A stretch of 64,000 bases of DNA, from sequence record PV796108.1. One strand, written 5' to 3'. Below the pieces are notes generated by a model. That model did not search any database, was not told the DNA's origin, and saw nothing but the letters and a program-made list of their open reading frames with translations. The stretch's first letter is position 1. Each line of letters starts with the position of its first letter. A program made the translations under genes and the position numbers. This document shows positions 24,862 to 62,448 of the stretch, piece after piece.

Positions 24862-25167
24862 ATGGTAAGGAAAGTATTTCAGGTACAGGTAATAAAGAAC
24901 AATAGTGGTTGGGATGCACATGAGGGATTGGTCTACGATGTAAGGAATGTAACGCATGATGTGGAATTGTATCGGTTGGCGGTAACGGAACGAAATACTG
25001 CTAATATGGATAAGGTGTGTATGGAGAGACCTAATCAGGTAGAGTATCGGGACCAGATATATAAAACGGGGCGGGCATGTTTACCTATGGATATGGCGAT
25101 TCGAGTGAATATGAATAATGAGGGTAATTTATGTAATCTGAAGGAGGATGATTATGCAAGTAGTTGA
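24862..25167 (+). CDS. Small beta-rich protein with shared C-terminal motif
   Basis: Ends NNEGNLCNLKEDDYASS. Confidence 0.7.
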   Translation: MVRKVFQVQVIKNNSGWDAHEGLVYDVRNVTHDVELYRLAVTERNTANMDKVCMERPNQVEYRDQIYKTGRACLPMDMAIRVNMNNEGNLCNLKEDDYASS

Positions 25168-25327
25168 TGTAACGTATGTAGGGTATGTGGATGAGGTAGA
25201 GGTATGTCGGTTTACACTGGAGAGTTGTGTGGAATGTGACCCGTCGTTTGAGCAAATGGTTGAGGATAGGCAGACGGAAATGGAAGTTATGTTGGATTTG
25301 AAGGATGTGTATTGGGATAGGGAGTAA
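25154..25327 (+). CDS. 57-aa acidic hypothetical protein
   Basis: AAGGAGG SD inside upstream ORF; MQVVDVTYVGYVDEVEVCRF...; followed by a terminator. Confidence 0.55.
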   Translation: MQVVDVTYVGYVDEVEVCRFTLESCVECDPSFEQMVEDRQTEMEVMLDLKDVYWDRE

Positions 25328-25388
25328 TCTCTGTCCCTTTTTTTGTACCGCTATGGTATTATGTTTTTATTATGTAAGGGGGATTTTT

Positions 25389-25586
25389 ATGAAGCAGTTA
25401 GTAACAGGTTTATATACGAGTCATGATGAGTTAGTGAGGGCGGGCTTCGCCTTTATGGAGACTCAAATTCATGATGAGGTAAAGCCTATTCATACATATA
25501 GTAAGGGTGTTAAAGTATATTACTTCGTGGAGAATAGTCCAGGGGAGTATATGTTTATGTATGGATTGAAAGGGGCGGTAGCATGA
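25389..25586 (+). CDS. Hypothetical protein
   Basis: Start moved to ATG 25389 after GGGGG SD. Confidence 0.65.
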   Translation: MKQLVTGLYTSHDELVRAGFAFMETQIHDEVKPIHTYSKGVKVYYFVENSPGEYMFMYGLKGAVA

Positions 25587-25831
25587 ACTCGCATTGTCTG
25601 GGTAACGTCGAGGAGATATATCAGCGAACGGTGGCAGGTCTTGTTGAACAACTTAAAGCACGCCGTCAAGAGAAAGGATTAACTCAGAAGCAATTGAGTG
25701 AGTTGGCAATGATTGATACGAAAACTATCCAGAAGATAGAGACAGGGAAATGGTTGCCATCCATGCGGAGTTTGATGTTAATGTCCGAGGCATTGGATAT
25801 GACTGTATTCTTTGATTTACGTATTAAGTAG
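25583..25831 (+). CDS. XRE-family HTH regulator
   Basis: LKARRQEKGLTQKQLSELAMIDTKTIQKIETGKWLPSMRSL. Confidence 0.92.
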   Translation: MNSHCLGNVEEIYQRTVAGLVEQLKARRQEKGLTQKQLSELAMIDTKTIQKIETGKWLPSMRSLMLMSEALDMTVFFDLRIK

Positions 25832-26010
25832 GTATACACAAGTTATTCATAGATTAGGTGATTTTTAAGTGTTTAGGCGGGGATTTTTCGATAGACTTGC
25901 TTGCACTGTTAATATCTATGCATAATCTTGTATATATATAGTTGTACAATATGAGAAGCGTGGGGACGTTATCTCAAAAAAAAATTTAAATTGAAAAGGA
26001 GAGATTTACA

Positions 26011-26532
26011 ATGGCAGCATTTGGCGCTAAAGCAGAACAAACTCAACAAGAGGAAACACAAGTAAAACAGGAGGGTACAGGTACTACTGCAACTATGGAA
26101 GCACCTAAACCTGAAGCACCAACTATGGAGGTACAAGCACCTAGAGAGGCTCGTGCCGCTACACGTAGATTTAGCAGAGGAGCTAATGACCCAACATGGT
26201 TCTTAAATCGTGACGGGGAGCTTGAGGTAGTAACTGATGAGGATACAAATCCAGCATTAGGAATCATCAAGATTTATGCTCGTGGTGCAACAGATGCACA
26301 GTTCAACAATGGTATTATCGCAAACGTATCATTAGATACAGTACTAGGTCGTATTGAAGGGTTCCAGATTCGTGAGTCTAAAGAGCGTGATGGAAACATT
26401 CAATTAAGTGAGCCATCTAGTTCTTACATGTCTGGAACACAAAAGAAGTACAATAACTATACGAAACTATTGAATCCAGTGAAAGCTCAGATTCTTAGTC
26501 ATGTATGGTCACAACTAAGCCCTGTGGAGTAA
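26011..26532 (+). CDS. SpoVG-like nucleic-acid-binding protein with disordered N-terminus
   Basis: GIIANVSL...IEGFQIRES...GNIQLSEPS...KKYNN...VKAQILSHV aligns by eye to SpoVG. Confidence 0.6.
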   Translation: MAAFGAKAEQTQQEETQVKQEGTGTTATMEAPKPEAPTMEVQAPREARAATRRFSRGANDPTWFLNRDGELEVVTDEDTNPALGIIKIYARGATDAQFNNGIIANVSLDTVLGRIEGFQIRESKERDGNIQLSEPSSSYMSGTQKKYNNYTKLLNPVKAQILSHVWSQLSPVE

Positions 26533-26696
26533 TCCCAGGGTTTTCTTTTTTTCGCCGTGCCCACTAGTTGGGTATTGGTGTGCCGCTAACAGAGGTTGTC
26601 TATTTTAAGACCTCTAGCGTGCTTGTAACGAGGGCGTAGTCTTTTCTGGTACAAATAGTCTTTGTAGCTGATTGACCCGCCGAGAGGAGGACGACA

Positions 26697-26793: not shown

Positions 26794-27108
26794 ATGGCAG
26801 TCGGGCCAGAACGTTTACTAGGTCATCCATTCTTTGTGCATGTACACATATCACATCCAGCATGGCAAGACCTATACGATAAAAAGATTCTTGTGCAGGA
26901 GTATGTACCCAATCCACAACCAAACTGGGTACCTGTACGGTCAAAGTATCATGTACTACGATGCGAACACAACAACCAATTCTTAAAAGAGGTTCATCAT
27001 TATCGGAATGGCTCCTATGTTATACAAGCAGATATATGTGAAAGAATTGCATATGATAACAAGGAGACACTCTATTCATTAAAACAAGAGGATGCTTCTT
27101 ATATATAG
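26794..27108 (+). CDS. Paralog family A (C-x-x-N beta-barrel-like) with C-terminal motif
   Basis: FFVHV...ILVQEY...RCEHNNQFL; ends DNKETLYSLKQED. Confidence 0.75.
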   Translation: MAVGPERLLGHPFFVHVHISHPAWQDLYDKKILVQEYVPNPQPNWVPVRSKYHVLRCEHNNQFLKEVHHYRNGSYVIQADICERIAYDNKETLYSLKQEDASYI

Positions 27109-27119
27109 GGGGAGAGTTT

Positions 27120-27368
27120 ATGATAGTACGATATGGGCACATGGAATTCAATGCGTCGGATATGCATACACCAGAGGGGATTATTGACATACTAGCGGAC
27201 ACATTTCCTGAGTTAGGTGATGGTAAAGGTATATATAAGAGAGAGGGCGATATCCTACGTATCTTTGTAAAACCTATGGCAACGCAGAAGTATCAGTTCC
27301 GCCAAGTCTCGTATGAGAACAATAAGACAACCATCACTACGATGAGGCAGGAGGTGAACTATGGGTAG
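27120..27368 (+). CDS. Hypothetical protein with C-terminal motif
   Basis: Ends NNKTTITTMRQEVNYG. Confidence 0.7.
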   Translation: MIVRYGHMEFNASDMHTPEGIIDILADTFPELGDGKGIYKREGDILRIFVKPMATQKYQFRQVSYENNKTTITTMRQEVNYG

Positions 27369-27675
27369 TTATAGAGCTGTACATGAAGAAGACTTAATAG
27401 GTGAGCCTATATATGTATATATACATGACCATGGCAATGCCCTTATTAATGACAAGTTTATATACGTAAGGAAGTTTCACCCGCAGGGGACTTTCGCTGG
27501 GCTATCCCGTAGCACGTATCAAGTAGAGAACTGTCCACACAATGATAAGCTACTATCTACCTATAATAACTATAGGGACTATAACATGTGTGTAGATAAA
27601 CGTAACTGTAGGAAAGCCGTAGAAAGCAATACAGTGGCTACTAAGTCTATGAAGATAGAAATACCCTTGGACTAG
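27361..27675 (+). CDS. Paralog family A with C-terminal motif
   Basis: NCPHNDKLL; ends SNTVATKSMKIE. Confidence 0.75.
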   Translation: MGSYRAVHEEDLIGEPIYVYIHDHGNALINDKFIYVRKFHPQGTFAGLSRSTYQVENCPHNDKLLSTYNNYRDYNMCVDKRNCRKAVESNTVATKSMKIEIPLD

Positions 27676-28281: not shown

Positions 28282-28572
28282 ATGCATCAATTTTTTGTTA
28301 AAGTACATGATGAACTACCAAGGGATTGTTTTATGTGGAAGCACTTAAAAGGTAAAGTTTTATTAGTAGAGGGCGGTGACCCGACACGAACTAAAAACGT
28401 TACTGTTCATATTGTAAAGTGTCCTCATAATGATAAACATTTTACTCCTAACCACACGAGTTATCATCGAGGTGGAGCTGGTATTTTAAATCAGATTATA
28501 GATGTCATTGATATGGGAGATAGCAATGTTGTTAGTTTAAGTAGTTGGAGGTTTAACCGTGAGTTTAGGTGA
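28282..28572 (+). CDS. Paralog family A with C-terminal motif
   Basis: FFVKV...LKGKVLLV...KCPHNDKHF; ends SNVVSLSSWRF. Confidence 0.75.
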   Translation: MHQFFVKVHDELPRDCFMWKHLKGKVLLVEGGDPTRTKNVTVHIVKCPHNDKHFTPNHTSYHRGGAGILNQIIDVIDMGDSNVVSLSSWRFNREFR

Positions 28573-30782: not shown

Positions 30783-31139
30783 ATGAGTAAGTTTTACAAT
30801 CAAATTAGGTGGGAACGTGAGAAGCCTGAGAACTTTAGTAAACCTTTTTTTATTAAAGTAGATGCTTATAAAAATGATAAAGACCTCAGTGTTTGGGAAT
30901 CACTAAAAGATAAGGTTATTTTGGTTGTTGAATATCATCCAGATGGTAAGTATAGTCACTTATCTTCATCAGATTATCAAATCTTACCACATCCTTTTAA
31001 TGATGCGATTAAAAATGATTGGCCTCCTCATTACTTTGAAAATGCACATTGTATTGCAAAAAGATTATGTACTGTATATGTAGAAAACAATGAGCAAGCA
31101 ACAATTGGTTTGAAGGAGGAATTTGATTGGACATCTTAA
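30783..31139 (+). CDS. Paralog family A with C-terminal motif
   Basis: FFIKV...LKDKVILV...PHPFND; ends NNEQATIGLKEE. Confidence 0.75.
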   Translation: MSKFYNQIRWEREKPENFSKPFFIKVDAYKNDKDLSVWESLKDKVILVVEYHPDGKYSHLSSSDYQILPHPFNDAIKNDWPPHYFENAHCIAKRLCTVYVENNEQATIGLKEEFDWTS

Positions 31140-31315: not shown

Positions 31316-31624
31316 ATGGCACCAAAATGTATTGGTAAATCTTTTTATGTACGAGTAAATGAAAGCCTACCTGAATCTGCTTTACGTAGTTATGGTTTAG
31401 CTAGAGGACAATTTGTTAAAGTGAGAAGGTATAATATAAAAGGTGAATATGCAAGCTTATGTAATTCATATTTCAATCTTACTCCTTGTAATGAAAATGA
31501 TGTTTTCTTTCTAAAAGAAAGCTCCTATATTCGAGGCTCTTTAACAATCCCTCAAGACTATTGTGAGTTTACCAATGATGTTTCAGTTACAAAGCTTATG
31601 AAAGAAGAGGAAGGTTGGTTTTAA
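31316..31624 (+). CDS. Paralog family A with variant C-terminal motif
   Basis: FYVRV...PCNENDVFF; ends TNDVSVTKLMKEEE. Confidence 0.75.
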   Translation: MAPKCIGKSFYVRVNESLPESALRSYGLARGQFVKVRRYNIKGEYASLCNSYFNLTPCNENDVFFLKESSYIRGSLTIPQDYCEFTNDVSVTKLMKEEEGWF

Positions 31625-32829: not shown

Positions 32830-33147
32830 ATGTTTATACGAGTAAATTGTTACGATCCAATAAACTCATGGAATCAAGCACACGGAACTGTTCTTGAAGC
32901 AGAGAAAGCAACCGTTGCTAATTTACCACAAATGAAAGAAAGTAAAATTGAAGAACCACTTCAACATTTTATGATTCCTATTACTGAGTTTAATAACAAA
33001 GCAATGGAGAAGCTTTATAGAAGTACAGCACATAGCTTTTTTAATTACATATACAAACAAGGTGGTATGTGTATCCATAGTAAGTTTTGTTCAGCAGTTA
33101 GTAATCAAGAAGCAGCTTCTAAAATGAGAAAAGAAGGTTTGTTATAG
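32830..33147 (+). CDS. Paralog family A with C-terminal motif
   Basis: MFIRV...TEFNNKAM; ends SNQEAASKMRKEGLL. Confidence 0.75.
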   Translation: MFIRVNCYDPINSWNQAHGTVLEAEKATVANLPQMKESKIEEPLQHFMIPITEFNNKAMEKLYRSTAHSFFNYIYKQGGMCIHSKFCSAVSNQEAASKMRKEGLL

Positions 33148-33170
33148 GGCGCATTTGTCGCCCTTTTTTT
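33146..33170 (+). terminator. Intrinsic terminator followed by CCGCTAAGGAG
   Basis: AGGGCG / CGCCCT stem plus T7. Confidence 0.75.
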
Positions 33171-33267
33171 ATTCCGCTAAGGAGGGATTTCAATGGTGAA
33201 GTTAATTATTGTGGTAACATCAACAATGCTTTTGGTATCATGTGCCGCTATCTAAATAACAATAGGA

Positions 33268-33627
33268 GTGATAATTATGAACGCTGAGTATATGCCCAAT
33301 AAAAAAGCAGATAGGATTGAAAAAAAAACAATTGGTCAGCCTTTCTTAATAGAAATCACAACTGACCTTGCTAGTCCATTTAAAACTGGAGATAAGGTAG
33401 TTGCAATGGAATACAAAAAGAGTTTCAATATGGATGCTGGTGACTTATTTGTTGTTCCTTGTAAACACAATGATATTTTAATTAAGAAAAACGGTAGCAT
33501 TCCTAGTAGGCATTATTCATATGATATAGCTGGTATGTATATTGGCAAGCACAAATATAAAAAGTATTCTGCTGTCAATCGAATAGCAGTAAATACATTT
33601 AAAAGGGATGAATTTTATTATGAATGA
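33268..33627 (+). CDS. Paralog family A with C-terminal motif
   Basis: PFLIEI...PCKHNDIL; ends VNRIAVNTFKRDE. Confidence 0.75.
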   Translation: MIIMNAEYMPNKKADRIEKKTIGQPFLIEITTDLASPFKTGDKVVAMEYKKSFNMDAGDLFVVPCKHNDILIKKNGSIPSRHYSYDIAGMYIGKHKYKKYSAVNRIAVNTFKRDEFYYE

Positions 33628-33949
33628 AGACATGATGCTTAACAGACCTGAATTAGAAAGATATAGTTCTTTTAGTTTATATGGAAAACCATATCTTGTT
33701 CGTGTAAATGAAGATTTTCCTTCTATCATGATGAAAGGATTAGTTGGTCAGGTTGTTGTCGTAGGTGAAGCTAGTCGTTTCCAAGACCCGTATGCTGGTT
33801 ATCCTGGTGTTAGTTCCACTATTCCTAGCGATGTTGTATTAGTACCCTGTAATCATAACGATAATATATTTGGTGTAGAAAACTTACCTAAAGATTATCG
33901 TGAAGGCATTGCTTATATTAATCGAAAGTGGTTAACAAAAATTGAGTAG
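33608..33949 (+). CDS. Paralog family A lacking the C-terminal motif
   Basis: PYLVRV...PCNHNDNIF; ends RKWLTKIE. Confidence 0.75.
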   Translation: MNFIMNEDMMLNRPELERYSSFSLYGKPYLVRVNEDFPSIMMKGLVGQVVVVGEASRFQDPYAGYPGVSSTIPSDVVLVPCNHNDNIFGVENLPKDYREGIAYINRKWLTKIE

Positions 33950-34097: not shown

Positions 34098-34448
34098 ATG
34101 ATAATTACAGTGAAAGCTGCAAAAGGAAATGGTTGGTACGATATTAATGGTCACCAACTTGAAGTTGTTCCAGTTACACCTGAAATGATTCGGGAAAAAG
34201 GTTCAGACTTAAATGTAGGTAGAGATATAAGGAAGTACTACCTTGCAATTGATTCTGAATTTAATCGCAACTTATTAGACAAATTAGTACATGAAGGTTA
34301 TTTAGGTCAACATTCAAGTTTTATTCGTTGGGCTGAACATTTTATATTTAAAAGCAAGACAGCTCTTATTCATAAGTCTTATATGAGCAAACCACTTAAT
34401 GATGCTCATGTTCTTAACTTCAAAGGTGAAGAACTGAGGTGTGATTAA
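34098..34448 (+). CDS. Paralog family A (divergent) with C-terminal motif
   Basis: SEFNRNLL; ends LNDAHVLNFKGEE. Confidence 0.7.
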   Translation: MIITVKAAKGNGWYDINGHQLEVVPVTPEMIREKGSDLNVGRDIRKYYLAIDSEFNRNLLDKLVHEGYLGQHSSFIRWAEHFIFKSKTALIHKSYMSKPLNDAHVLNFKGEELRCD

Positions 34449-35665: not shown

Positions 35666-35941
35666 ATGGAATTAATTCCAGTTGGTACAGAAGTAAGAGT
35701 ACGTTCGGATTCACCGTATTATCCACAGAATTTTGTTGATAAGCATCTTTTGTCAGGAACCCTTCAAGGTATTGTTATTAGGAATGACCATAAATCAGCT
35801 GGAGATAAACGCTATATTTATCGCGTAGAATGGTTTTTAAAAGGTAAGTCTTATGATAAAAACAATTATCGTCCATTAGATTTAGAAGCTATTCACAACA
35901 TCGGTATGGTTCATAAGATGAATCAGGAGGATGCGTTATGA
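35666..35941 (+). CDS. Paralog family B (PIGT, SH3/KOW-like) with C-terminal motif
   Basis: IPVGTEVRVR..S.Y..Q...YRVEW...NNYRPLDL; ends HNIGMVHKMNQED. Confidence 0.75.
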   Translation: MELIPVGTEVRVRSDSPYYPQNFVDKHLLSGTLQGIVIRNDHKSAGDKRYIYRVEWFLKGKSYDKNNYRPLDLEAIHNIGMVHKMNQEDAL

Positions 35942-36216
35942 TTTATCCAATAGGTACATATGTACAAATAAGAAAAAACACTGAGTATTACCATCAACAG
36001 TTTGTTAGTTATGACCCTCACAAAGAAAAACTTAATGGTGTAGTTGTTAATAATGAATACGATGGTGATGGAGAAGAGGAGTATATCTACAAAGTAGAAT
36101 GGGAACTTGAAGGTGAATATCATAGTTCTAACTTTTATCGTATTGAAGATTTAGAGGAAGCAAAGAACATATCTCAAGTTCGTAACTTTAAAAAGGAGGA
36201 GAATGTATTTGACTAA
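35938..36216 (+). CDS. Paralog family B with C-terminal motif
   Basis: YPIGTYVQIR...YKVEW...NFYRIEDL; ends KNISQVRNFKKEE. Confidence 0.75.
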   Translation: MIYPIGTYVQIRKNTEYYHQQFVSYDPHKEKLNGVVVNNEYDGDGEEEYIYKVEWELEGEYHSSNFYRIEDLEEAKNISQVRNFKKEENVFD

Positions 36217-42047: not shown

Positions 42048-42356
42048 ATGGGTAAAGTAATTAGAACTACTGATGTTAGAATTCCAATCACTGTTAGAGA
42101 TATTGGTGGTGGTGAAATCATCTTTTATGCTTCTACTTATCATCCTACTTATGATTCTGCATCAGATCGTTATCCAGTTCCAAAATGTCCAGAAAACGAC
42201 CACCTATTAGGAGAAGATGTTATGGATGCTAATAGACGAGATATGTATAGAAGAGATAGTTGGGTATTACCGAAGCACAAAGTTAAACTAGCAAAGGCGG
42301 ACAACAGAGCTACTAGCGGTAAGTTCAAAAAGGAAGGTGAGATTTTTGAGCTTTAA
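42048..42356 (+). CDS. Paralog family A (divergent) with C-terminal motif
   Basis: PKCPENDHLL; ends DNRATSGKFKKEG. Confidence 0.7.
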   Translation: MGKVIRTTDVRIPITVRDIGGGEIIFYASTYHPTYDSASDRYPVPKCPENDHLLGEDVMDANRRDMYRRDSWVLPKHKVKLAKADNRATSGKFKKEGEIFEL

Positions 42357-42630
42357 TATAGGTGATAAAGTAGAAATTGTTAAAGGTAATTCGTATTTTA
42401 ACCAGCAATTCAGTGGAATGGTAAAGCTGGAAGGAGTCATTACAGATGTCTCAGGACAAAATGAATGGGCTAGTACTACCTTTCAATACAAAGTAAGCTG
42501 GATGTTAAATGGAAAAGAAAGAGCTGCATATCTTTATAATGATTGTGATTTAGCTCTACTTGTCATCAACAATCAAAAAGTATCGTCTAGGTTAAAACAA
42601 GATGATACGGAAGATTGGATGACTATATGA
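42337..42630 (+). CDS. Paralog family B with C-terminal motif
   Basis: FNIGDKVEI...YKVSW...YNDCDL; ends NNQKVSSRLKQDD. Confidence 0.75.
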   Translation: MRFLSFNIGDKVEIVKGNSYFNQQFSGMVKLEGVITDVSGQNEWASTTFQYKVSWMLNGKERAAYLYNDCDLALLVINNQKVSSRLKQDDTEDWMTI

Positions 42631-42947
42631 TGTTACTTCCAATTGGTACGAAAGTAATTGTCCGTGAAGGTACACAATTTAAAGGTCAAGATTCTTATTT
42701 CGATGATTTTCCTATTCTTAGAAACAGTAGCTATACTGGTAATGATAAAAAACAAGGTTATGGGATTATATATCAATACATTAACATTGAAGATTTTTGT
42801 TATAGTGTTCGTTGGTATAAGCAAAATGGTGAGCAATATGCTTCCAATAACTATCGTAAAAGTGATTTACAAGCATTAACTAGTAACAATGAAGAAACTT
42901 TAAACAGACTTAAATCTGATGAAGATGCAAGCATAGGAGGATTCTAA
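42615..42947 (+). CDS. Paralog family B with C-terminal motif
   Basis: LPIGTKVIVR...YSVRW...NNYRKSDL; ends NNEETLNRLKSDE. Confidence 0.75.
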   Translation: MDDYMMLLPIGTKVIVREGTQFKGQDSYFDDFPILRNSSYTGNDKKQGYGIIYQYINIEDFCYSVRWYKQNGEQYASNNYRKSDLQALTSNNEETLNRLKSDEDASIGGF

Positions 42948-43235
42948 ATGAAAGAAGATTTGCTTCCTATTGGTACAAAGGTAAGATTGCGGACTGATTC
43001 TGAATACAAAGGTCAAGATAAATATAATCTTGATGGCAATAAGATATATGGATATGGAATCATTCATAAGCATCGAGAAACATACGGTATGTTTAAGTAT
43101 ATGGTTCAATGGTTTAAGCATACTGGTGAGCATTTTAATAGTAATGCTTATCGTAAAATTGATTTAGATGTAATCGAAGAAACTAATAAAAGTTCGGTTA
43201 ACAACTTTAAAGTTGAGAAAGATATCCTATTATAG
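42948..43235 (+). CDS. Paralog family B with C-terminal motif
   Basis: LPIGTKVRLR...YMVQW...NAYRKIDL; ends TNKSSVNNFKVEK. Confidence 0.75.
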   Translation: MKEDLLPIGTKVRLRTDSEYKGQDKYNLDGNKIYGYGIIHKHRETYGMFKYMVQWFKHTGEHFNSNAYRKIDLDVIEETNKSSVNNFKVEKDILL

Positions 43236-43382: not shown

Positions 43383-43811
43383 ATGTCTCATGTAAAAAAA
43401 GCAGGTACTTTAAAATATGAAGGTGAAACTCTTAATGTTTACATCAATGAAGAGTTTCCTGATGATGTAAAATCTTTCGTTCAAGAAGGAGAATGCAAAC
43501 CAATCATTATCTTATATATAGATGATGATGCGCCTCGTACAAAAGATAGCTTCATTATGAATTATGAACGCTACTTAAAAGATAAGCCGACAAAAGAACA
43601 CATTATTCCTGATATCATGAAAAAACTAACTATTGAAGATATTGGTTCCGTTCAACATTACACTGAAAATGGTTCTTTTCAACAAATTGTTGAGGATTCA
43701 GATATCGGAGTAATGGAGTGGGAAGAAGGTGGATTTTACATTGTATATCTTCCTCCTGAAAACAATGAAACTTCTATACGTAAGATGAGGTCGGAATTAG
43801 ATTACTCTTAG
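43383..43811 (+). CDS. Hypothetical protein with C-terminal motif
   Basis: Ends NNETSIRKMRSEL. Confidence 0.75.
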   Translation: MSHVKKAGTLKYEGETLNVYINEEFPDDVKSFVQEGECKPIIILYIDDDAPRTKDSFIMNYERYLKDKPTKEHIIPDIMKKLTIEDIGSVQHYTENGSFQQIVEDSDIGVMEWEEGGFYIVYLPPENNETSIRKMRSELDYS

Positions 43812-43819: not shown

Positions 43820-44101
43820 GTGAACATGTCTTATCAGTATTATTATGTAAGAGGAGAAACACCTCTGGTTTATACTAGTGATACAGATGACTGGGTTGAA
43901 CTCTTAACAAAGCATAGAGCAGTTTATCTTCCTATATCTCGTAAGAGAGTAGAAGAAACTGAACGTAAAGCTAAGAATACAATAAAGATATTAGGTTGGC
44001 GGCGTTCAAAAGCTGGTATTCTTTATGCTTTGTTGAAATTTGAAAATGAATTAACTAATATTCAATCCATCAATAGATGGAAAGAGGAGAGTTGCTTATG
44101 A
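43820..44101 (+). CDS. Hypothetical protein with C-terminal motif
   Basis: Ends TNIQSINRWKEESCL. Confidence 0.7.
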   Translation: MNMSYQYYYVRGETPLVYTSDTDDWVELLTKHRAVYLPISRKRVEETERKAKNTIKILGWRRSKAGILYALLKFENELTNIQSINRWKEESCL

Positions 44102-44478
44102 CAATGGAACCTCATGGCTATGTTGTTACTCCAGATGAAAAGATGTTTGTTGATTTGTATTTACATCAACGATTACATGAAGATGTTGTAGCATTACGAG
44201 CAAAGAACGGTAATCCAATTGCAGTTCTTACAAATGCTTCTACATCATCACGTATGCATCAAATCTTACGTTTATGTGAACCCTCTCTACGAGACGAAAC
44301 ATTACATGTTAAGATATTAGGTTCTTGTTCAGAATTACATGATGTTATACATATTAATAAACATGTAAAAAGTTCGTTAATGGTTGCAATGAACGAATAC
44401 AATCTTGCAGTCATTTCATTAGGTGGTAACAATACAGATAGTCTGAATCGAATGAGAAAAGAGGAGACTTGTTTATGA
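44098..44478 (+). CDS. Hypothetical protein with C-terminal motif
   Basis: Start moved to ATG 44098; ends NNTDSLNRMRKEETCL. Confidence 0.7.
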   Translation: MTMEPHGYVVTPDEKMFVDLYLHQRLHEDVVALRAKNGNPIAVLTNASTSSRMHQILRLCEPSLRDETLHVKILGSCSELHDVIHINKHVKSSLMVAMNEYNLAVISLGGNNTDSLNRMRKEETCL

Positions 44479-53528: not shown

Positions 53529-53535
53529 TATGAAT

Positions 53536-53568: not shown

Positions 53569-53608
53569 CGGTGTAATTATATTTGTATTATTAAAAGGAG
53601 GTAATTGT

Positions 53609-53983: not shown

Positions 53984-53997
53984 AGGAGGGAATTAAC

Positions 53998-55536: not shown

Positions 55537-55566
55537 ACCGTTAGATAACTAAGGAGGAAATTTATT

Positions 55567-56292
55567 ATGGCAAACCGTCCAGATTCTATTAACATTGAGA
55601 TTTTACAAGAGGGTGTTACAGTTAAAACAACGAAAGGTGGCGTAACATCTATCAAGGAAACAAATCTTGAGCAGATTCAACGTCAATTAACAAGCAATGA
55701 GCGTATTGAGACGCCGTTGCTTCCAAGTATTTGGGGTGTTCAAAAGTATGTAAAGCGTGGTAAACGTGAGCTTTATGTAATCACGACTCCTCCAGGGGTA
55801 CGTAAAGTACAGTATACTGGTGATGACCGTGGTGAGTATGAGATTCCTGTACCAGCAGCAGTTTGGTTTGTAACATCACAAGAACGTTCTGGTGGTGGAC
55901 GTCAATTAGTTCATACAACAGTTTATGCAATTAAAAATCCTATTTTAACAGGTATTGAACAATTGTATCGTATGCCATTTAGTAACTGCGATAACTCATA
56001 CATTTGCTGGGGAGATGAGAGTCCACAAATTTCATCACCAAAAAGTATTCAATCTATTCCAGACCGTTTCTTTGGAATGCCTTTCAACAGTGATTTAGGA
56101 AGTAATGCGTATCAACCGATTAAAGAAGAGATTGATGGAAAAGAGATTAGTCACTTCCGTATCAATCATTTATTCCGTTACTTAGATCGTAAGTTGAAAG
56201 CAGACAAGGATTTCCGTTTCCCGAACAATCATTTAAACAGTTACGAGTCATTTAAACGTGTACTTGACCACGAGCTTCGTCGTTTATCTTAA
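55567..56292 (+). CDS. Prokaryotic E2-like protein (Prok-E2 family D / PRTRC protein B-like)
   Basis: TPLLP...LYRMPFSNC..SYICWG with candidate catalytic Cys; lies between Ubl and JAB/E1 genes. Confidence 0.8.
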   Translation: MANRPDSINIEILQEGVTVKTTKGGVTSIKETNLEQIQRQLTSNERIETPLLPSIWGVQKYVKRGKRELYVITTPPGVRKVQYTGDDRGEYEIPVPAAVWFVTSQERSGGGRQLVHTTVYAIKNPILTGIEQLYRMPFSNCDNSYICWGDESPQISSPKSIQSIPDRFFGMPFNSDLGSNAYQPIKEEIDGKEISHFRINHLFRYLDRKLKADKDFRFPNNHLNSYESFKRVLDHELRRLS

Positions 56293-56345
56293 TCTATATT
56301 TTGGTAGTTAATAAAAAAACAAACAATTAAAAGGAGAGATTTATT

Positions 56346-57725
56346 ATGACTAAAGCAGCAAAATCAAGCGCAATGGCGGCACTACGAGCAAAAATGGCAG
56401 GACAAACAATGGCATATCACATGGGACCTCAAACAGCTGAGGTCTATGCACAAAAGCCAACAAACTATGTTACAGCAGGTAATGGTGTTTTCCGTGTTAT
56501 CCAAAAGGATATCGGTGCTTTCGTAACAAAAGTTGCTGATGGTAAGATTCCAGGCTTCCCAGAGATGGAGGAAGGCGTACATTTACAAATTCCAAAGATT
56601 CCTTATAAGTATTGGTTACAAGTATTATCATTCTACAAAGATGTTAATGCGAAAGATGGTACTGAAGCATCTGTATTATTCTTCTGGAACACAAACAATG
56701 TAACATTACCAACTCATTATGACCCAACGCCAGCACAAGCTGCAAAAGGTGAGTTAGGACCAGAAGTAAAAGGTTTAACACAAGATGGTCAATTAATCAT
56801 TTATTGCCCAGTACAAAAGAACTCTGGTAGTTTATCAGACTTCACGAAAGATTCATTTGTAGATTACTTACGTCTACATACAGCTCAGTTATGTGAAACA
56901 CATTCTCATAATACAATGGGAGCGTTCTGGTCAGGAACTGACGATAGCAATGAGAACTATCCACAGTTCTATGGTGTTATTGGTAAAGTTTCAAGCAAAG
57001 AACCTGAACATCGTTTCCGTTATGCATTAGGTAAAGAAAAATTTGATTGCGAACTATGGGAATTATTCGAAAAGCCTAAAGTTCAAAAGATGGAAATTGT
57101 AACAATCGACATTCCAGGTGTTGGCACTGTTGAAGATGTACAAGAAATTAAAAATCTTGACTTTAAAGGTCCATGGCCGATGGTTGATTATCCAAGTGAT
57201 TGGATGGGTCAACATAGTAAAAGTTACTACACTCCCAGTTACGGCACAGCCTATACTCGTAAAACCTACGGTACAGGTGGTACAGCAGTCCAAACCCACG
57301 GAGGTCAAGGTGGCGGAATCTTTCCCAGCTACGGACACTGGCCAGAAGAATGGGACACTCTTGGGGGCTGGGCTGACGCTGGCAATCAGTCTGGCCTTGG
57401 GTTGGCTGCGGAAGTAGCTGGCGAAGGAGACTATGGTTTCGGAGAAGGTACCAGGCAAGGGCAAGAATCTTTCAACGAAGCGTACAAAAAATTCTTACAA
57501 GAACCAGTCGAGGGCCAAGGGACGTGGACGTTCTCAAAAGCAAGGGAAAAGAAAGTAGCTGAAGGTCAGCTTGAAACTGATGGTACAGTAGTTGATTATG
57601 TAATCATGGAACCAACAGAAGCTGAAGAATGTGATGAGATTCATTCAATGATTGGTGAATTAATTAACTTTGGTGTTTATGCAACCATCGTTGATATTGC
57701 GAAAGAAGAACATCTTGTAGAGTAG
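56346..57725 (+). CDS. JAB/MPN+ metallo-isopeptidase (PRTRC protein A-like) with long low-complexity tail
   Basis: Catalytic Glu in GTEASV plus ETHSHNTMGAFWSGTDD (HxH-x7-S-x2-D). Confidence 0.88.
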   Translation: MTKAAKSSAMAALRAKMAGQTMAYHMGPQTAEVYAQKPTNYVTAGNGVFRVIQKDIGAFVTKVADGKIPGFPEMEEGVHLQIPKIPYKYWLQVLSFYKDVNAKDGTEASVLFFWNTNNVTLPTHYDPTPAQAAKGELGPEVKGLTQDGQLIIYCPVQKNSGSLSDFTKDSFVDYLRLHTAQLCETHSHNTMGAFWSGTDDSNENYPQFYGVIGKVSSKEPEHRFRYALGKEKFDCELWELFEKPKVQKMEIVTIDIPGVGTVEDVQEIKNLDFKGPWPMVDYPSDWMGQHSKSYYTPSYGTAYTRKTYGTGGTAVQTHGGQGGGIFPSYGHWPEEWDTLGGWADAGNQSGLGLAAEVAGEGDYGFGEGTRQGQESFNEAYKKFLQEPVEGQGTWTFSKAREKKVAEGQLETDGTVVDYVIMEPTEAEECDEIHSMIGELINFGVYATIVDIAKEEHLVE

Positions 57726-57793
57726 GCATTAGCCTACTTTACATTTTTTTATTGCACTACATATCTTATTTATATTAAAAGGAGAGATTTATT

Positions 57794-58651
57794 ATGAAAC
57801 TTGAAAAAACTTATTCTTTAGATACTATGTACAGAACTGCTAAACATTTTATCGTAATTGGAGCTGGGGGTAACGGTGGTTATTTCATTCCACAATTAGC
57901 TCGTATGGTTTCTGTTCAAAATAAAATTCGTGAAGTACAACGTTTACCATTACACCGTATTACAATCATTGAAGCTGATGGAGTAGAAGCGAAGAATTTA
58001 ACTCGTCAAAACTTTATTGCAGCTGATATTGATAAAAATAAAGGTGAAGTAATGGCTGCTCGTTATGCTCGTGCTTTTGGTCTTGAAATTGGATTAGTAG
58101 GGCAATATCTTGATAGTCATGAGATGTTACTTAAAATTATGCGTGAAAGTACATCAAAAGAAGTACCAGTTATTTGTGGTATGGTAGACAACAATAAAAC
58201 TCGTAAATTAATGCATGATGCATTTAAAGCATACTCAGGTGCATTCTATCTTGATGTAGGTAATGAAGAGTTTGCAGGACAATGTGTTCTTGGTTACAAC
58301 CACAACAAAGATCGTTTTGTTTTACCAAGAGAAGGTGGAGATTCAATCCAAAGCTTTAGTTTACCAAGTGTTTGTGAAGTATTCCCAGAGGTAATGGAAG
58401 CGCAAGACAAATTACCAACTGAAATGTCTTGTGCAGAACGTTCTGAGTCAGCTCCTCAAAATATTTATACAAACATGACAGCATCAAATGAAGCATTAGG
58501 ATTTGTGAACCATTTATTAACAGACAATGTAAATGGTTCAACACCAACTGGTTTACGTGTTCATACAACAATCTTTGATGCTAACACAATGAATAAAACA
58601 ACTCGTTTTAATCGTACGAGTGAGCTTGAAAAATATGTGGCGGGGAAATAA
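57794..58651 (+). CDS. ThiF/E1-like ubiquitin-activating enzyme (PRTRC ThiF-like)
   Basis: VIGAGGNGG, DGVEAKNLTRQNF, GMVDNNKTR, YLDVGN, candidate catalytic Cys in MSCAE...PQ. Confidence 0.92.
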   Translation: MKLEKTYSLDTMYRTAKHFIVIGAGGNGGYFIPQLARMVSVQNKIREVQRLPLHRITIIEADGVEAKNLTRQNFIAADIDKNKGEVMAARYARAFGLEIGLVGQYLDSHEMLLKIMRESTSKEVPVICGMVDNNKTRKLMHDAFKAYSGAFYLDVGNEEFAGQCVLGYNHNKDRFVLPREGGDSIQSFSLPSVCEVFPEVMEAQDKLPTEMSCAERSESAPQNIYTNMTASNEALGFVNHLLTDNVNGSTPTGLRVHTTIFDANTMNKTTRFNRTSELEKYVAGK

Positions 58652-58678: not shown

Positions 58679-59110
58679 ATGTATACAACAATTGATTTAT
58701 TATCAAAGAGTCTTAATGAAAATCAAATTCGTGGTAGATTAGGCTTAGATTACTCTGACATAGTTGAATTAAAACATGTACATATGCCCGTTCTTCTTCA
58801 TGGAAGAAAAGGTGAAATGCATTATTACTTGTTAAAAAATCCAGATAATTATCCTGGCGCTCAAGCTGATACTTTATCTGATATGAAAAGTATTGTTGCT
58901 GTTTCTCCAGAACTTGAACCATGGATAGAAGAACTAATAAGTGAAACAGACGAACACGACGGAAGTTTCATTGGTCGAACTAATAACTACAAAAATGATA
59001 TTTACCCATATTGGTGGTTAGTTTCTCATACATTAATACCATGTTTATCAGAGTCTAATACAAGTTCAATTGTGCAACTAAAAAGTGATGAAGACTTAAC
59101 AATAGATTAG
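58679..59110 (+). CDS. Paralog family C with C-terminal motif
   Basis: Start ATG 58679; MYTTI...YYL..NPD.YPG...YWWL; ends SNTSSIVQLKSDE. Confidence 0.75.
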   Translation: MYTTIDLLSKSLNENQIRGRLGLDYSDIVELKHVHMPVLLHGRKGEMHYYLLKNPDNYPGAQADTLSDMKSIVAVSPELEPWIEELISETDEHDGSFIGRTNNYKNDIYPYWWLVSHTLIPCLSESNTSSIVQLKSDEDLTID

Positions 59111-59119: not shown

Positions 59120-59554
59120 ATGTACACAACAATAAGACAATTAATGGATGATGTCGGTTTTGATGAGGTAGCTTATCAGATTGGAATGGCTGCAAAAGAT
59201 ATGAATAAAGCATTTGATTTTGAAATACCTGTTTACTTAGTAGGAGAAAATCATAACAAGCAATGGTATTACTTGATAGACCATCCTGATGGATATGAAG
59301 GAGGAAATAGTAATGTTCTTGTTGCATTACAAGATATCAAAATCTATAAAGAACGAGAAGTTCGTCCATATTCAGACTGGGAAAATCTTAGGGATGAAGT
59401 AGACGAAGATGGCGATTTCCTTGGTGATTATAATGATTATGATTCGGCAATCAACAAGTATTGGTGGATTTCTTTTAGCCAACCAATCACATTGTTTGAG
59501 TACGATAACAATCAAAATCTTAGAAAGTTAAATAAAGAAACCCCTTTTGAGTGA
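59120..59554 (+). CDS. Paralog family C with C-terminal motif
   Basis: MYTTI...YYL..HPD.YEG...YWWI; ends DNNQNLRKLNKET. Confidence 0.75.
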   Translation: MYTTIRQLMDDVGFDEVAYQIGMAAKDMNKAFDFEIPVYLVGENHNKQWYYLIDHPDGYEGGNSNVLVALQDIKIYKEREVRPYSDWENLRDEVDEDGDFLGDYNDYDSAINKYWWISFSQPITLFEYDNNQNLRKLNKETPFE

Positions 59555-60714: not shown

Positions 60715-60956
60715 TAACCAACACTGTCGGAGGTGTTAAATTCGCTTCTTAACATTATCTGCATTTTTAGAAGTATTAATGGGGTAACACAGGGGTATTA
60801 AACATAAATCAGTGGGAGCTTAACGGCTCCCCTCTTTCAGGGAGGAGTAATCCTCCCCTTTCTGTTTTAAGTAATGATTCTTGAATGAGTCCCAAGAGTC
60901 AAGTAGGGCAAGGAAGAGAATTCCCCTAGATTCTCTTCCCTGAAGGAGATGATAAT

Positions 60957-61295
60957 ATGGAAAGAATAGTAGTTTATGAAGCATATGATTATGTATCAGG
61001 ATGTATTATTCTAGGTATATTTATAGGAGTAGGATTTTGGATGGCTTATTACGGTGGAAGAAGAAAAATTCTCTATGGCATACTAGGAACACTTGGAATT
61101 CTATTATGTATATTTGGAATATTATCAGCTAATCTTGAATCACTACAAAAACCAGTTAATCAGTACCTTGTTGATAAGAAAGTCATTCCACAAATTGACT
61201 TCGGAAGATACCAAGTTATTGGACAGCAAGGCGACACCTTCTTATTAGAAAGAATTGAACACACAAAAACATTTAGAGTAGATAATAGGAGGTAG
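60957..61295 (+). CDS. Two-TM membrane protein, paralog of 61301
   Basis: Shared IP.IDF..Y.I..Q.G..F..E. Confidence 0.75.
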   Translation: MERIVVYEAYDYVSGCIILGIFIGVGFWMAYYGGRRKILYGILGTLGILLCIFGILSANLESLQKPVNQYLVDKKVIPQIDFGRYQVIGQQGDTFLLERIEHTKTFRVDNRR

Positions 61296-61300
61296 ATACG

Positions 61301-61642
61301 ATGCAAGAACTCGTTAGTTATAGTCCACCATGGTACAGCATATTCATGATTGCATTTGGAATTGGATATGGAGTTGTTTGTGTAGTTATTGCTTTTGTCC
61401 ATCACAAGCAAGGTAAAAGTAATCGCATATCTACCATACTAGCTTGTCTATTTGGAATTTTACTTTGTGCAGGATTAATTCTATTTAATATGACTGACCT
61501 TAAAACAAAGAATGTAAAATACCAAATTCATAAAAATGATATTCCTTCTATTGATTTCGCTGACTATAAGATAGAAGAACAAACAGGAAATTACTTTATT
61601 ATAGAAAAGCGTGAAAAAGAAAAGGATGTTGAATTTAAATAA
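61301..61642 (+). CDS. Two-TM membrane protein, paralog of 60957
   Basis: 113 aa, GGAGG SD. Confidence 0.75.
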   Translation: MQELVSYSPPWYSIFMIAFGIGYGVVCVVIAFVHHKQGKSNRISTILACLFGILLCAGLILFNMTDLKTKNVKYQIHKNDIPSIDFADYKIEEQTGNYFIIEKREKEKDVEFK

Positions 61643-61657
61643 TGGGAGGTAGTTATT

Positions 61658-61999
61658 ATGTTAAAAGCACTGTTTCCAAAGAAACCTACACCTCATGAGT
61701 TAGAAATAATAAGACTACAAAAGAAAATAGCACAACTAGAAGATGAGAATCATGAGTTACAAATGAAATTAAAAGTGAAACGAGTTATTGATGCGCCGAC
61801 GCCAGTTAATGGTTTAATCATGACTTCTAATACATACGAAGTCTTTTCTCGTCATGAGAAGATGACACTAAGTGAAGGTGCTATCAGATGGAGAGGTCTT
61901 GAAATAGTTAAAACAAACTCATTGGCATTTACAGATGGGTTGTTGTACTATCTTTCAGAGTATGAAGAATACATGAAAGAGAAAGGCGTGAAAGGATGA
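61658..61999 (+). CDS. Hypothetical protein with N-terminal coiled coil
   Basis: 113 aa, GGAGG SD. Confidence 0.7.
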   Translation: MLKALFPKKPTPHELEIIRLQKKIAQLEDENHELQMKLKVKRVIDAPTPVNGLIMTSNTYEVFSRHEKMTLSEGAIRWRGLEIVKTNSLAFTDGLLYYLSEYEEYMKEKGVKG

Positions 62000-62448
62000 A
62001 CATCAAGACATTAAGTATTCTTCATAGTAATTTAAGCGCAGAAGAAAGAGGTATTTTCTATAAAGACATTCTGCAAAAATTACATGAGAAGAGACAACAA
62101 AAAGATATGGTTTTAAATTTAACTGGTTTACCATATTCTAGTGCAAAGCATGTGCAACAGATGGAATGTGGTATGCCTGTTTATCTATTAAAGAACCCTA
62201 ACGTTCATGATAGATATGCTATTTCTGCTTATTTAGATGAAGAATGTACGCAACATGTAGGCTGGGTTAGTCGTGGCGGAGGTACTTTATTCCCTCAGGC
62301 ACAAGCAAATCATGAAGTTTACAGAAAAATTATCCAAAAAGAGAAATTTATTCTTGCATATCCGTTTAAAAGTGGATACTATATAACCAAAAGCTTGAGC
62401 AATCAAAATACTTTAGGCGTTATGAAACACGATGAAGTATTATATTGA
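61996..62448 (+). CDS. HIRAN-domain protein with C-terminal motif
   Basis: LTGLPY...VYLLKNPNVHDRYAISAY...HVGWVSR; ends SNQNTLGVMKHDE. Confidence 0.7.
   Translation: MNIKTLSILHSNLSAEERGIFYKDILQKLHEKRQQKDMVLNLTGLPYSSAKHVQQMECGMPVYLLKNPNVHDRYAISAYLDEECTQHVGWVSRGGGTLFPQAQANHEVYRKIIQKEKFILAYPFKSGYYITKSLSNQNTLGVMKHDEVLY

Follow-up and report, generated by a model that had tools for sequence, protein, structure and literature searches.

Genomic context of the motif

The window analysed here is a stretch of 64,000 nucleotides covering bases 124001-188000 of Bacillus phage Edson, a large Bacillus cereus phage. It carries 110 annotated proteins, and many of its small open reading frames, which belong to many unrelated families, end in the same short motif with an invariant asparagine, predicted to form a helix. 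The window also encodes the components of a ubiquitin-like (Ubl) system, namely a poly-Ubl protein (52602-53528), an E2 of family D, a JAB-like protein and ThiF/E1. The motif closes 20 window proteins cleanly, in addition to one insertion variant and one degenerate copy. The coordinates below refer to the window, all the tags listed lie on the + strand, positions in the motif are counted from the Asn (0), and the labels F03, F04 and so on stand for the groups into which the carriers were placed.

The first of these tags (25114..25167) belongs to ORF 24862-25167 (101 aa, group F06), reads NNEGNLCNLKEDDYASS, and is kept in the ortholog of phage WH1. Group F03 accounts for several others. The tag at 27055..27108 closes ORF 26794-27108 (104 aa) and reads DNKETLYSLKQEDASYI, with the ribosome site of the next gene lying after the stop, while the tag at 27625..27675 closes ORF 27361-27675 (104 aa), which has no downstream gene for 173 nt. 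The tags at 31086..31139 and 33574..33627 belong to ORF 30783-31139 (118 aa) and ORF 33277-33627 (116 aa), respectively. The tag at 31571..31624 of ORF 31316-31624 (102 aa) is a variant with a one-residue insertion, TNDVSVTKLMKEEEGWF, which scored 9.8 in the position matrix. ORF 28333-28572 (79 aa) is a homolog of F03 (hmmsearch E 1.5e-10) with a degenerate tag at 28522..28572, SNVVSLSSWRFNREFR, in which Asn replaces the acid at +10 and which falls below the matrix threshold. A decayed tag (33908..33949) was found at the end of the untagged F03 paralog 33620-33949, which terminates in INRKWLTKIE, whereas its WH1 ortholog continues as KIEEEINYD with Glu at +8. ORF 42048-42356 (102 aa, F11), tagged at 42300..42356, is distantly related to F03.

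The SH3-like group F04 includes ORF 35666-35941 (91 aa; tag 35894..35941), which has Asn at +8 where the WH1 ortholog has Arg, ORF 35938-36216 (92 aa; tag 36163..36216), ORF 42346-42630 (94 aa; tag 42568..42630), ORF 42630-42947 (105 aa; tag 42885..42947), and ORF 42948-43235 (95 aa; tag 43182..43235), the last of which has no downstream gene for 147 nt. The remaining carriers belong to other groups. ORF 27120-27368 (82 aa, F08; tag 27318..27368) has a body that is a single Prok_Ub repeat (hmmsearch E 2.5e-30) homologous to the poly-Ubl protein. ORF 32830-33147 (105 aa, F14; tag 33100..33147) is followed directly by a terminator-like hairpin at 33146-33164, and ORF 34098-34448 (116 aa, F21; tag 34395..34448) has a WH1 ortholog with Arg at +8. 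Further examples are ORF 43383-43811 (142 aa, F12; tag 43761..43811), ORF 43826-44101 (91 aa, F25; tag 44054..44101) and ORF 44098-44478 (126 aa, F23; tag 44428..44478). Two F09 paralogs, ORF 58679-59110 (143 aa; tag 59054..59110) and ORF 59120-59554 (144 aa; tag 59504..59554), lie directly downstream of the ThiF/E1 gene, and the latter has Asn at +8, as does its WH1 ortholog. Finally, ORF 61996-62448 (150 aa, F24; tag 62398..62448) has no downstream gene for 202 nt and gave no Pfam or PHROG hit.

Enrichment, position and phylogenetic distribution

The observation made by the sequence-only reading, that about 22 small proteins share a C-terminal motif, is confirmed. All 22 strings it listed are present in the ORFs to which it assigned them, although five of these ORFs have slightly different annotated starts (28333, 33277, 42346, 42630 and 43826), and two of the 22, those of ORFs 31316 and 28333, are imperfect. 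Its count and its division of the carriers into at least three paralog families, a HIRAN protein and singletons were underestimates, and the HIRAN assignment of 61996-62448 is not supported.

The simplest expression, N.{6}[LMFW][KR].[ED], matched 18 of 1,210 C-terminal positions and 0 of 15,883 internal positions in the 110 annotated window proteins (Fisher p 1.8e-21). In 1000 residue shuffles the mean was 0.15 C-terminal hits and the maximum 3, and there were no N-terminal hits and none in reversed sequences. A position matrix revealed information at columns which the expression had not selected (-1, +3, +4, +9, +11 and +13), and the full consensus is [NSTD]-N-x2-[ATNS]-[LVI]-x2-[LMFW]-[KRN]-x-[ED]-x2-[LIVY], ending 2-8 residues before the stop. 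The distribution of matrix scores is sharply bimodal. Across the Edson genome there are 54 C-terminal hits at a score of 9 or more against 0.2 expected from the internal rate, so that the motif ends about 54 of 308 proteins, or about one in six. There are 53-56 such ORFs genome-wide, well beyond the window, all but one of which lie on the + strand.

The motif ends at least 47 proteins in phage WH1, and it is retained in a 229-kb relative that is only 39% identical in the one protein compared, that of group F20. On the contrary, it is essentially absent from KLEB27-3, 0305phi8-36 and Bcp1, as the 315 kb scanned in these phages hold 2 weak hits in total, of which one is in an annotated gene.

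Selection acts on the protein

The recurrence of the motif could be a by-product of nucleotide-level constraints, namely the Shine-Dalgarno sequence or translational coupling of the next gene. There is some evidence in this direction. In the 29 carriers whose next gene overlaps or abuts, the Glu codon is GAG in 15, whereas it is GAG in 4 of the 23 others, and K-G-E is encoded by AAAGGAGAA. However, the sequence-only reading had named the restriction of the motif to genes with an overlapping downstream Shine-Dalgarno site as a reason to discard it, and this restriction was not observed. Of 52 carriers, 23 have the next start at least 9 nt after the stop or no downstream gene, and in these the motif, its spacing and its residue frequencies are the same, with only the synonymous choice of GAG for Glu being shifted. 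The Asn and the hydrophobic positions lie 24-30 nt upstream of any ribosome site, the codons vary at every motif position, and the non-coding frames show no enrichment. The nucleotide-level explanation is therefore refuted as a sufficient cause and remains very unlikely.

The comparison of orthologs leads to the same view. In 38 Edson-WH1 ortholog pairs, Asn is identical in 38/38 and Glu/Asp in 35/38, whereas the protein bodies are 60% identical and the non-motif positions of the tag 39-53%. The Lys at +8 is less constrained, being Arg or Asn in 12 of 53 carriers and swapped in 9 of the 38 pairs.

Carriers and predicted structure

The interpretation offered by the sequence-only reading is partly supported. 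Its proposal of a transferable tag rather than a part of one fold holds, since with the tag masked the carriers form 27 BLAST clusters, 24 groups at an HHalign probability of 90% or more, and about 18 at 60% or more. Three carriers are demonstrable fragments of untagged phage proteins of different folds (a Prok_Ub repeat, the tail tube N-terminus and a tail sheath segment), and another is a lone domain 1, or half, of an SF2 helicase. It is nevertheless possible that the carriers descend from fewer ancestors than profile comparison can see, as both folded families give SH3-like matches, none of them significant. The reported absence of the motif from membrane proteins also holds, as a TM-like segment occurs in 2% of tagged and 24% of untagged small ORFs. 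The carriers are soluble and small (74-210 aa, median about 104), and lie in tandem paralog arrays with high turnover between Edson and WH1 (38 reciprocal pairs out of 53).

The proposed N-capped amphipathic helix fits two AlphaFold2 models of different families, in both of which a helix begins at the invariant Asn. In ORF 42630-42947 a predicted beta barrel is followed by helix 87-99 starting at N87 with pLDDT of 54-68, and in ORF 26794-27108 helix 90-96 follows N89 with pLDDT below 50, against core blocks mostly above 84-90. Foldseek gave only weak matches (E 0.03 or higher) for the former, mostly to SH3-like barrels such as PsaE and YorP. These models, which were built on 16-19 sequences, are weak evidence, and as the linker before the helix is only 4-5 residues, the helix might pack on its own domain.

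A proposed docking or sorting signal

The motif is best explained, with moderate confidence, as a lineage-specific short linear docking or sorting signal, that is, a C-terminal amphipathic helix of about 14 residues appended to small soluble accessory proteins of many unrelated folds and read by one common receptor. The analysis shows that the motif is selected at the amino-acid level, tied to the C-terminus, located on unrelated domains, and predicted to be a helix which starts at the invariant Asn and is not confidently packed on its own domain. The remainder, including binding itself, is inferred. In this view the helix would be loosely attached in the free protein, and on binding the stripe Asn0 / +4 / +7 / +11 / +13-14 would insert into a groove of the receptor, with the Asn making a buried, specific hydrogen bond, which would explain why Ser, Thr or Asp never replace it, and Lys/Arg at +8 and Glu/Asp at +10 flanking the stripe and making edge salt bridges. 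When dozens of unrelated proteins share a terminal peptide, the precedent is a sorting or processing signal rather than a stoichiometric regulator, and the tag is hence taken as committing its carriers to one shared fate. Of the possible fates, all inferred and each by itself unlikely on present evidence, loading into the virion for co-injection ranks first, followed by timed removal by a protease or unfoldase, and then by recruitment to the phage Ubl machinery as adaptors and docking on a host hub, which rank equally.

No receptor was found, and every phage-encoded candidate that could be tested fails to co-vary with the tag. The Ubl/E2 system and the ClpP-like protease are also found in KLEB27-3, the AAA ATPase with its DUF8224 partner is also found in Bcp1, both phages being essentially free of tags, and the beta-propeller protein is missing from WH1. 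In the library searched, no expression, proteomic or binding data exist for this phage group.

Capsid or virion loading is a specific version of this explanation and remains tentative. Here the helix would bind the scaffold or the inner capsid surface, so that about 50 small proteins are packaged and injected with the DNA, which would be functionally like the T4 capsid targeting sequence or encapsulin cargo-loading peptides. The small, soluble and diverse carriers turn over fast between relatives, as expected of an effector repertoire, and the strict terminal position and the predicted amphipathic helix match those of cargo peptides. Moreover, the relative 0305phi8-36 has small virion proteins, found by mass spectrometry, that are encoded outside the structural module. 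However, no tagged gene lies in the structural module or on its strand. The promoter type seen before structural operons (TTGAC-N-GTTACG) is absent from the window and the right arm, and some right-arm transcription units have sigma-A-like promoters. WH1 labels six proteins as ‘virion structural’ in the 140 kb read, on an unknown basis, and none of them is tagged. In addition, phage targeting sequences described so far are N-terminal.

A degron, recognised by a host or phage AAA+ protease or adaptor so that accessory proteins are removed on schedule, is rather doubtful. The tag is a C-terminal, exposed, low-confidence helix, and the phage encodes a Clp-family protease (Pfam CLP_protease E 1e-23) and a classical AAA ATPase. 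However, the last 2-8 residues are variable in length and sequence, unlike ClpX-type tags that need defined terminal residues, and the Clp-like gene matches head maturation proteases best, besides the occurrence of both candidates in phages essentially without the tag.

A link to the phage Ubl system is likewise unlikely, whether [LMFW]-K-x-[ED] is taken as a SUMO-like acceptor site recognised by the E2 or the helix as docking the carriers on the E1, E2, JAB or Ubl proteins as substrate adaptors. The core of the motif equals the psi-K-x-E/D consensus, two tagged paralogs follow the E1 gene directly, and one tagged protein is itself a Ubl repeat. However, the replacement of Lys by Arg or Asn, while Asn0 never changes, argues against an acceptor lysine, and the site is predicted to be helical and not extended. 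KLEB27-3 carries the same E1, E2, JAB-like (PRTRC_A) and poly-Ubl genes but no tag enrichment in 117 kb. The adjacency of 2 of about 54 carriers to the E1 gene is not more than expected for genes spread along the whole arm. Recognition as a Ubl acceptor site is thus weakened, while the evidence does not settle which of the functions listed by the sequence-only reading (packaging, scaffold, protease adaptor, Ubl system) applies.

It is also possible, though improbable, that there is no shared receptor, and that the helix is a self-association element (a two-heptad coiled coil with a core Asn) or a structural cap, inherited from a few ancestral genes and spread by recombination inside the tandem arrays. 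The hydrophobic positions 0/+4/+7/+11/+14 with Lys and Glu at flanking positions fit a d-a-d-a-d heptad. In F20 the helix is ancestral, as gp091 of KLEB27-3 keeps h-x2-h-K-x-E at the homologous place, and the SH3-like matches of both folded families, though not significant, point in the same direction. On the other hand, two heptads are too short for a stable coiled coil, and self-association would not hold Asn invariant across about 100 proteins of different folds while the neighbouring positions drift. Tags are attached to fragments of proteins whose parents lack them, and the codons differ throughout, so there is no sign of recent DNA-level spread.

Comparison with known terminal signals

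The capsid targeting sequence of T4, present on the internal proteins and Alt, is likewise a short amphipathic peptide shared by otherwise unrelated small soluble phage proteins, which commits them to one fate. However, the T4 signal is N-terminal, sits on a handful of proteins and is removed by the prohead protease, whereas the Edson tag is C-terminal and sits on about 54 proteins encoded apart from the structural module. Encapsulin cargo-loading peptides and microcompartment encapsulation peptides are C-terminal (or terminal) peptides of 10-20 residues on unrelated cargo, which bind a shell protein, and those of microcompartments are amphipathic helices. A profile of the Edson tag found no similarity to any solved chain (best E 0.1, internal coiled coils). 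Cargo genes normally neighbour the shell gene, which is not the case here, and the linkers of these systems are long, whereas here the linker is 4-5 residues.

The SUMO consensus psi-K-x-E/D, read directly by an E2, is identical in form to the core [LMFW]-K-x-[ED], and Edson encodes E1, E2, Ubl and JAB-like proteins. In the Edson tag, however, Lys is dispensable, the invariant residue is an Asn eight positions upstream, the motif is C-terminal and predicted to be helical, and the Ubl system also occurs without it. Hub-binding terminal motifs, such as the PIP box, the bacterial beta-clamp motif and the gp45-binding tails of T4, have an invariant amide residue followed by spaced hydrophobics at a protein terminus and are shared by many partners of one hub. 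The residue (Asn, not Gln) and the spacing are different in Edson, and its carriers are mostly orphan small proteins, not replication enzymes. Among the poxvirus ankyrin/PRANC (F-box-like) proteins, many viral paralogs carry a short C-terminal helical docking element that plugs diverse binding domains into one machine. PRANC proteins share one N-terminal repeat type and dock on host Skp1, whereas the N-terminal domains of the Edson carriers are unrelated. C-terminal degrons such as ssrA are also peptides that can be moved between proteins, but in the Edson carriers the terminal residues are not conserved, and the conserved part is a predicted helix 2-8 residues in from the end.

Occurrence of the motif and its conservation as protein

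The window is 100% identical to bases 124001-188000 of Bacillus phage Edson (PV796108.1, 233,813 bp, host B. cereus), which has vB_BceM_WH1 as its nearest relative, at 85% nucleotide identity over a 4.3-kb test stretch. The rest of the Edson genome and 140 kb of WH1 were also examined, and nearly every gene in the Edson record is annotated as a hypothetical protein. The sequence-only reading had claimed a shared motif at the C-termini of about 22 unrelated small proteins, and this observation held, as all the strings it reported are present. Among the 110 annotated window proteins, the pattern N.{6}[LMFW][KR].[ED] matches 18 of 1,210 positions that lie within 10 residues of the C-terminus and none of 15,883 other positions (Fisher p 1.8e-21). 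Residue shuffles gave 0.15 C-terminal hits on average, and N-termini and reversed sequences gave none. A position matrix built from the hits carries information at columns which the pattern did not fix, namely -1 (N/S/T/D), +3 (A/T/N/S), +4 (L/V/I), +9, +11 and +13 (L/I/V/Y). The scores are bimodal, and over all 1,167 ORFs of the genome there are 54 C-terminal hits at a score of 9 or more, against 2 internal ones. Genome-wide, 53 ORFs match the pattern at the C-terminus, about 18% of the 308 annotated genes, and all but one are on the + strand. They lie in tandem arrays at 148-168, 182-191, 199-202, 205-212 and 219-220 kb, in addition to two in the replication/transcription module at 5.6 and 13 kb. 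In the window, 20 ORFs are canonical, whereas ORF 31316 has a one-residue insertion and ORF 28333 is degenerate.

A motif of this kind could be a by-product of the Shine-Dalgarno sequence or the overlap of the next gene, and restriction of the motif to such overlaps had been named beforehand as one of two outcomes that would overturn the observation. However, synonymous codons vary at every conserved position, so that conservation is not at the nucleotide level. When 52 carriers were classed by the distance to the next annotated start, 29 overlap or abut, 12 have a gap of 9-14 nt, and 11 have a gap of 30 nt or more or no downstream gene. Residue frequencies and tail length are the same in all three classes, and hence 23 of 52 carriers show the same motif with the next start at least 9 nt after the stop or none. 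Only the synonymous Glu codon shifts towards GAG where a ribosome site overlaps. The Shine-Dalgarno explanation therefore fails as a cause.

Selection on the protein was assessed in 38 reciprocal-best Edson-WH1 pairs. Protein bodies are 60% identical and non-motif positions inside the tag are only 39-53% identical, while Asn is identical in 38/38 pairs, the acid in 35/38 (class 38/38) and the +7 hydrophobic residue is conserved in class in 38/38. Position +8 changes among Lys, Arg and Asn in 9 pairs.

Distribution among related phages

Close relatives from Logan assemblies keep the tags. A full HMMER pass over 1.84 billion representatives with the F20 carrier, a predicted helicase-domain protein, gave one real distant homolog, 39% identical, on the 229-kb contig ERR14864770_2445, and this homolog still has the motif. 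Walking about 45 kb of that contig showed seven more or less canonical tags on the expected orthologs, one of them with Gln at +8. As controls, 117 kb of KLEB27-3, whose sheath protein is 50% identical, 100 kb of 0305phi8-36 and 98 kb of Bcp1 were scanned. Together they give two weak C-terminal hits, one of them in an annotated gene. The tag is therefore confined to the Edson/WH1/ERR14864770 clade.

Homologs elsewhere were few. A tblastn search of two carrier families against 50,697 phage records found only Edson and WH1, and searches of a 5.8-billion-protein set found only close relatives. A scan of IMG/VR found no relative of the phage E2. Pfam and PHROG scans of 30 carriers gave nothing significant, except for PHROG hits to the tube-like and sheath-like N-terminal fragments of two carriers. 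Likewise, a profile of the tag searched against all PDB chains gave a best E of 0.1, with only chance-level internal coiled-coil segments, and no Pfam, PHROG or PDB entry matches the motif itself. Literature searches returned nothing on WH1, no proteomic data, nothing on shared C-terminal motifs in phage early proteins, and nothing relevant on Prok_Ub and PRTRC.

Diversity and origin of the carriers

The tag could be part of one divergent protein superfamily, in which case the bodies should remain recognizably homologous once it is masked. With the tag removed, the 97 tagged proteins of Edson and WH1 form 27 BLAST clusters, and profile-profile comparison (HHalign) gives 24 groups at a probability of 90% or more and about 18 at 60% or more. 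Positive identifications show different origins. For example, ORF 27120-27368 is one Prok_Ub repeat, homologous to the poly-Ubl protein at 52602-53528 (E 2.5e-30). Edson ORF E219367 begins with residues 55% identical to residues 11-58 of the tube-like protein E109361, and E219860 contains a stretch 52% identical to tail-sheath residues 449-479; both lie in Edson 219367-220171 (31367-32171 of L003, one of the further Edson stretches, here L003 to L006). The parents of these three lack the tag, which is the clearest evidence that the tag is portable. It suggests that new accessory genes arise from duplicated fragments of the phage's own Ubl, tube and sheath genes, and that acquiring the tag is what makes a new fragment useful, a route for gene birth in large phages.

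The F20 carrier (E13027; L004 13027-13659, minus strand) is a single SF2 helicase RecA-like domain 1 (reverse gyrase H1, E 5e-6) with Walker A and B motifs. It is the largest and best-conserved carrier (210 aa, 94% identical to WH1) and lies in conserved synteny between a Cas4-like nuclease and a sigma factor. It is the only carrier family with a homolog in KLEB27-3, which keeps h-x2-h-K-x-E at the homologous helix but has Ile in place of Asn and runs on for about 30 more residues. One possible origin of the tag is therefore the C-terminal helix of this protein. An origin from the Prok_Ub alpha-1 helix was also considered, as in the 82-aa tagged Ubl the tag lies colinear with the start of a second repeat. 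Profile comparison of all tags with Ubl repeats aligns the same register, but at a probability of 0.9%, and this is only a lead.

Predicted structure of the tag

AlphaFold2 on the alignment of the F04 carrier family predicts a small beta barrel with most core blocks above 90 pLDDT and a helix at 87-99 that starts at Asn87, with pLDDT 54-68. The best Foldseek matches of this model, all weak (E 0.03 or higher), are mostly SH3-like barrels. On the alignment of the F03 family, the prediction is an alpha/beta domain and a helix at 90-96 after Asn89, with pLDDT below 50. On a helical wheel, Asn0, +4, +7, +11 and +13/14 form one stripe, and Lys/Arg +8 and Glu/Asp +10 lie on its two edges. Carriers are 74-210 aa, and only 2% have a TM-like segment, against 24% of untagged small ORFs. 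Membrane targeting was rejected because the helix is net acidic. Similarly, Asn-linked glycosylation was rejected because Ser or Thr at +2 occurs in only 9 of 53 carriers.

The stripe, with its core Asn and charged flanking positions, has the a/d pattern of a parallel coiled-coil dimerization segment. Such a segment needs at least 3-4 heptads, though, whereas the conserved part spans about 14 residues and the modelled helices are 7-13 residues. Self-association by a two-heptad coil would also not explain the invariance across folds.

Interpretation and comparison with known signals

The data fit a short linear docking or sorting motif read by a common receptor, a reading considered somewhat more likely than not. 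Ser, Thr and Asp cap helices as well as Asn does, so the invariant Asn argues for a specific buried contact rather than helix capping. The C-terminal enrichment, the selection on the amino acids and the unrelatedness of the bodies are shown by the analysis, while docking, the receptor, the Asn contact and any packaging, proteolysis or conjugation of the carriers are inferred. The interpretation in the sequence-only reading, a transferable helical tag acting as a targeting or docking signal, was partly supported. By analogy with the known cases in which dozens of unrelated proteins share a terminal peptide, a sorting or processing signal is favored.

Four phage-encoded receptor candidates fail a phyletic test. 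The first is the ubiquitin-like system, a complete conjugation set at window 48943-58651, with poly-Ubl at 52629-53528, an E2 of family D at 55567-56292, a JAB-like protein at 56346-57725 and ThiF/E1 at 57794-58651. The poly-Ubl protein has five tandem Prok_Ub repeats, the last ending ...TKGG plus a 15-residue tail. In the phage collection only Edson, WH1 and KLEB27-3 have this set, and KLEB27-3, with ThiF, the JAB-like PRTRC_A protein, E2 and poly-Ubl, shows only 2 weak tag hits in 117 kb. The second candidate, the AAA ATPase at 38781-39860 with its neighbor, a 690-aa DUF8224 protein at 36453-38525, also occurs in Bcp1, which has no tags. The first about 800 nt of the ATPase gene are 73% identical at the nucleotide level to Bcp1, an unrelated herellevirus, which points to recent exchange among B. 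cereus phages, and Bcp1 also carries a 678-aa ORF in the DUF8224 position. The third, a Clp-family protease, best matches head maturation proteases and is also in KLEB27-3. The fourth, a 498-aa PQQ-type beta-propeller protein between tagged arrays (Edson 203532-205028; L003 15532-17028), is missing from WH1; with a phosphoesterase and three tagged genes it forms a block present in Edson and in NCBI contig MTEW01002841.1 but absent from WH1.

A SUMO-type psi-K-x-[E/D] acceptor site resembles the core of the motif, as [LMFW]-K-x-[ED] occurs in 41 of 53 Edson carriers. The Lys of such a site is the acceptor and therefore indispensable, but here Arg or Asn stands at +8 in 12 of 53 carriers. The dispensable Lys argues against a SUMO-like acceptor site. 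An ssrA/ClpX-type degron has defined last 2-3 residues with a free carboxylate, whereas the tail after the acid is 2-8 residues long, of variable sequence and variable last residue. A degron is possible, but these residues do not fit.

Loading into the virion has phage precedent and suits the size and turnover of the carriers. Against it, the tagged genes are not in the structural module, and in the 140 kb of WH1 examined none carries its 'virion structural' label, the basis of which is unknown; WH1 does give this label to the poly-Ubl protein and to the 493-aa ORF (window 49895-51376). A promoter-like motif, TTGAC-N17-19-(G)GTTACG(T/A)T, precedes structural operons at L005 1148-1176 and 9975-10004 and L006 8700-8729 (Edson about 51.1, 60.0 and 108.7 kb, minus strand). 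It has no match in the window or the right arm, and it may be a late-promoter class for one of the phage sigma factors. Its absence from the tagged arms is suggestive only, and sigma-70-type sites are not enriched. The T4-type capsid targeting sequence is N-terminal and removed by the prohead protease, while the tag is C-terminal, with no N-terminal hits. Encapsulin or microcompartment cargo peptides are short terminal peptides shared by unrelated cargo, as is the tag. However, the tag does not resemble a described cargo peptide or a solved complex, and while cargo genes adjoin the shell gene, no tagged ORF lies within the minus-strand virion-gene block at about 36-133 kb. Clamp-binding tails and PRANC/F-box adaptors are further neighbors at the level of function, and none of the systems compared qualified by sequence, position or gene context. 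Shared terminal signals are known; what is unusual here is the scale in a phage and the invariant Asn.

A more novel but unlikely reading is that the tag is the docking element of a repertoire of about 50 fast-evolving substrate adaptors. Each small variable domain would bind a different host or phage target, and the common helix would plug it into the phage-encoded E1/E2/Ubl/JAB machine, as a prokaryotic-virus counterpart of F-box or PRANC adaptor families. A capsid-loading code that packs an arsenal of about 50 small proteins for co-injection is less novel and more likely than this, though still doubtful.

Shared terminal peptides are how cells and some viruses sort proteins, but no phage is known to us in which about 18% of the proteome, from roughly 20 unrelated families, carries one such peptide, and the libraries searched returned none either. 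If one receptor reads the tag, a single peptide would give experimental access to the fate of some 50 orphan proteins that are otherwise 'hypothetical', as bait for pull-down, as a reporter tag or as a point-mutation target, with the invariant Asn providing a clean negative control. In practice, the motif would be a portable tag for Bacillus phage engineering, whatever its fate turns out to be.

Other features of the genomes

A recurrent unit-start context is found at window 20415-20500, 33148-33276 and 41996-42047 and at L003 1356-1423, which consists of a terminator hairpin, a T run, and then (T)CCGCTAAAGGAG just before the start codon. In the WH1 region homologous to L003 3891-8236 (Edson 191.9-196.2 kb), DNA polymerase III alpha is annotated as three separate ORFs with gaps of 0.4-0.7 kb between them, suggesting introns or inteins. 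LAGLIDADG-type ORFs interrupt the helicase region in the ERR14864770 relative. This divergent relative also encodes an Apyc1 (anti-Pycsar) family metallo-beta-lactamase-fold protein next to thymidylate kinase (5041-5796 of L020, a stretch of contig ERR14864770_2445). The structural module of Edson (L005 and L006, Edson 44-107 kb, minus strand) holds seven ORFs of 1,495-2,515 aa, and two tail-sheath paralogs (525 and 483 aa) with two tube-like paralogs (191 and 190 aa).
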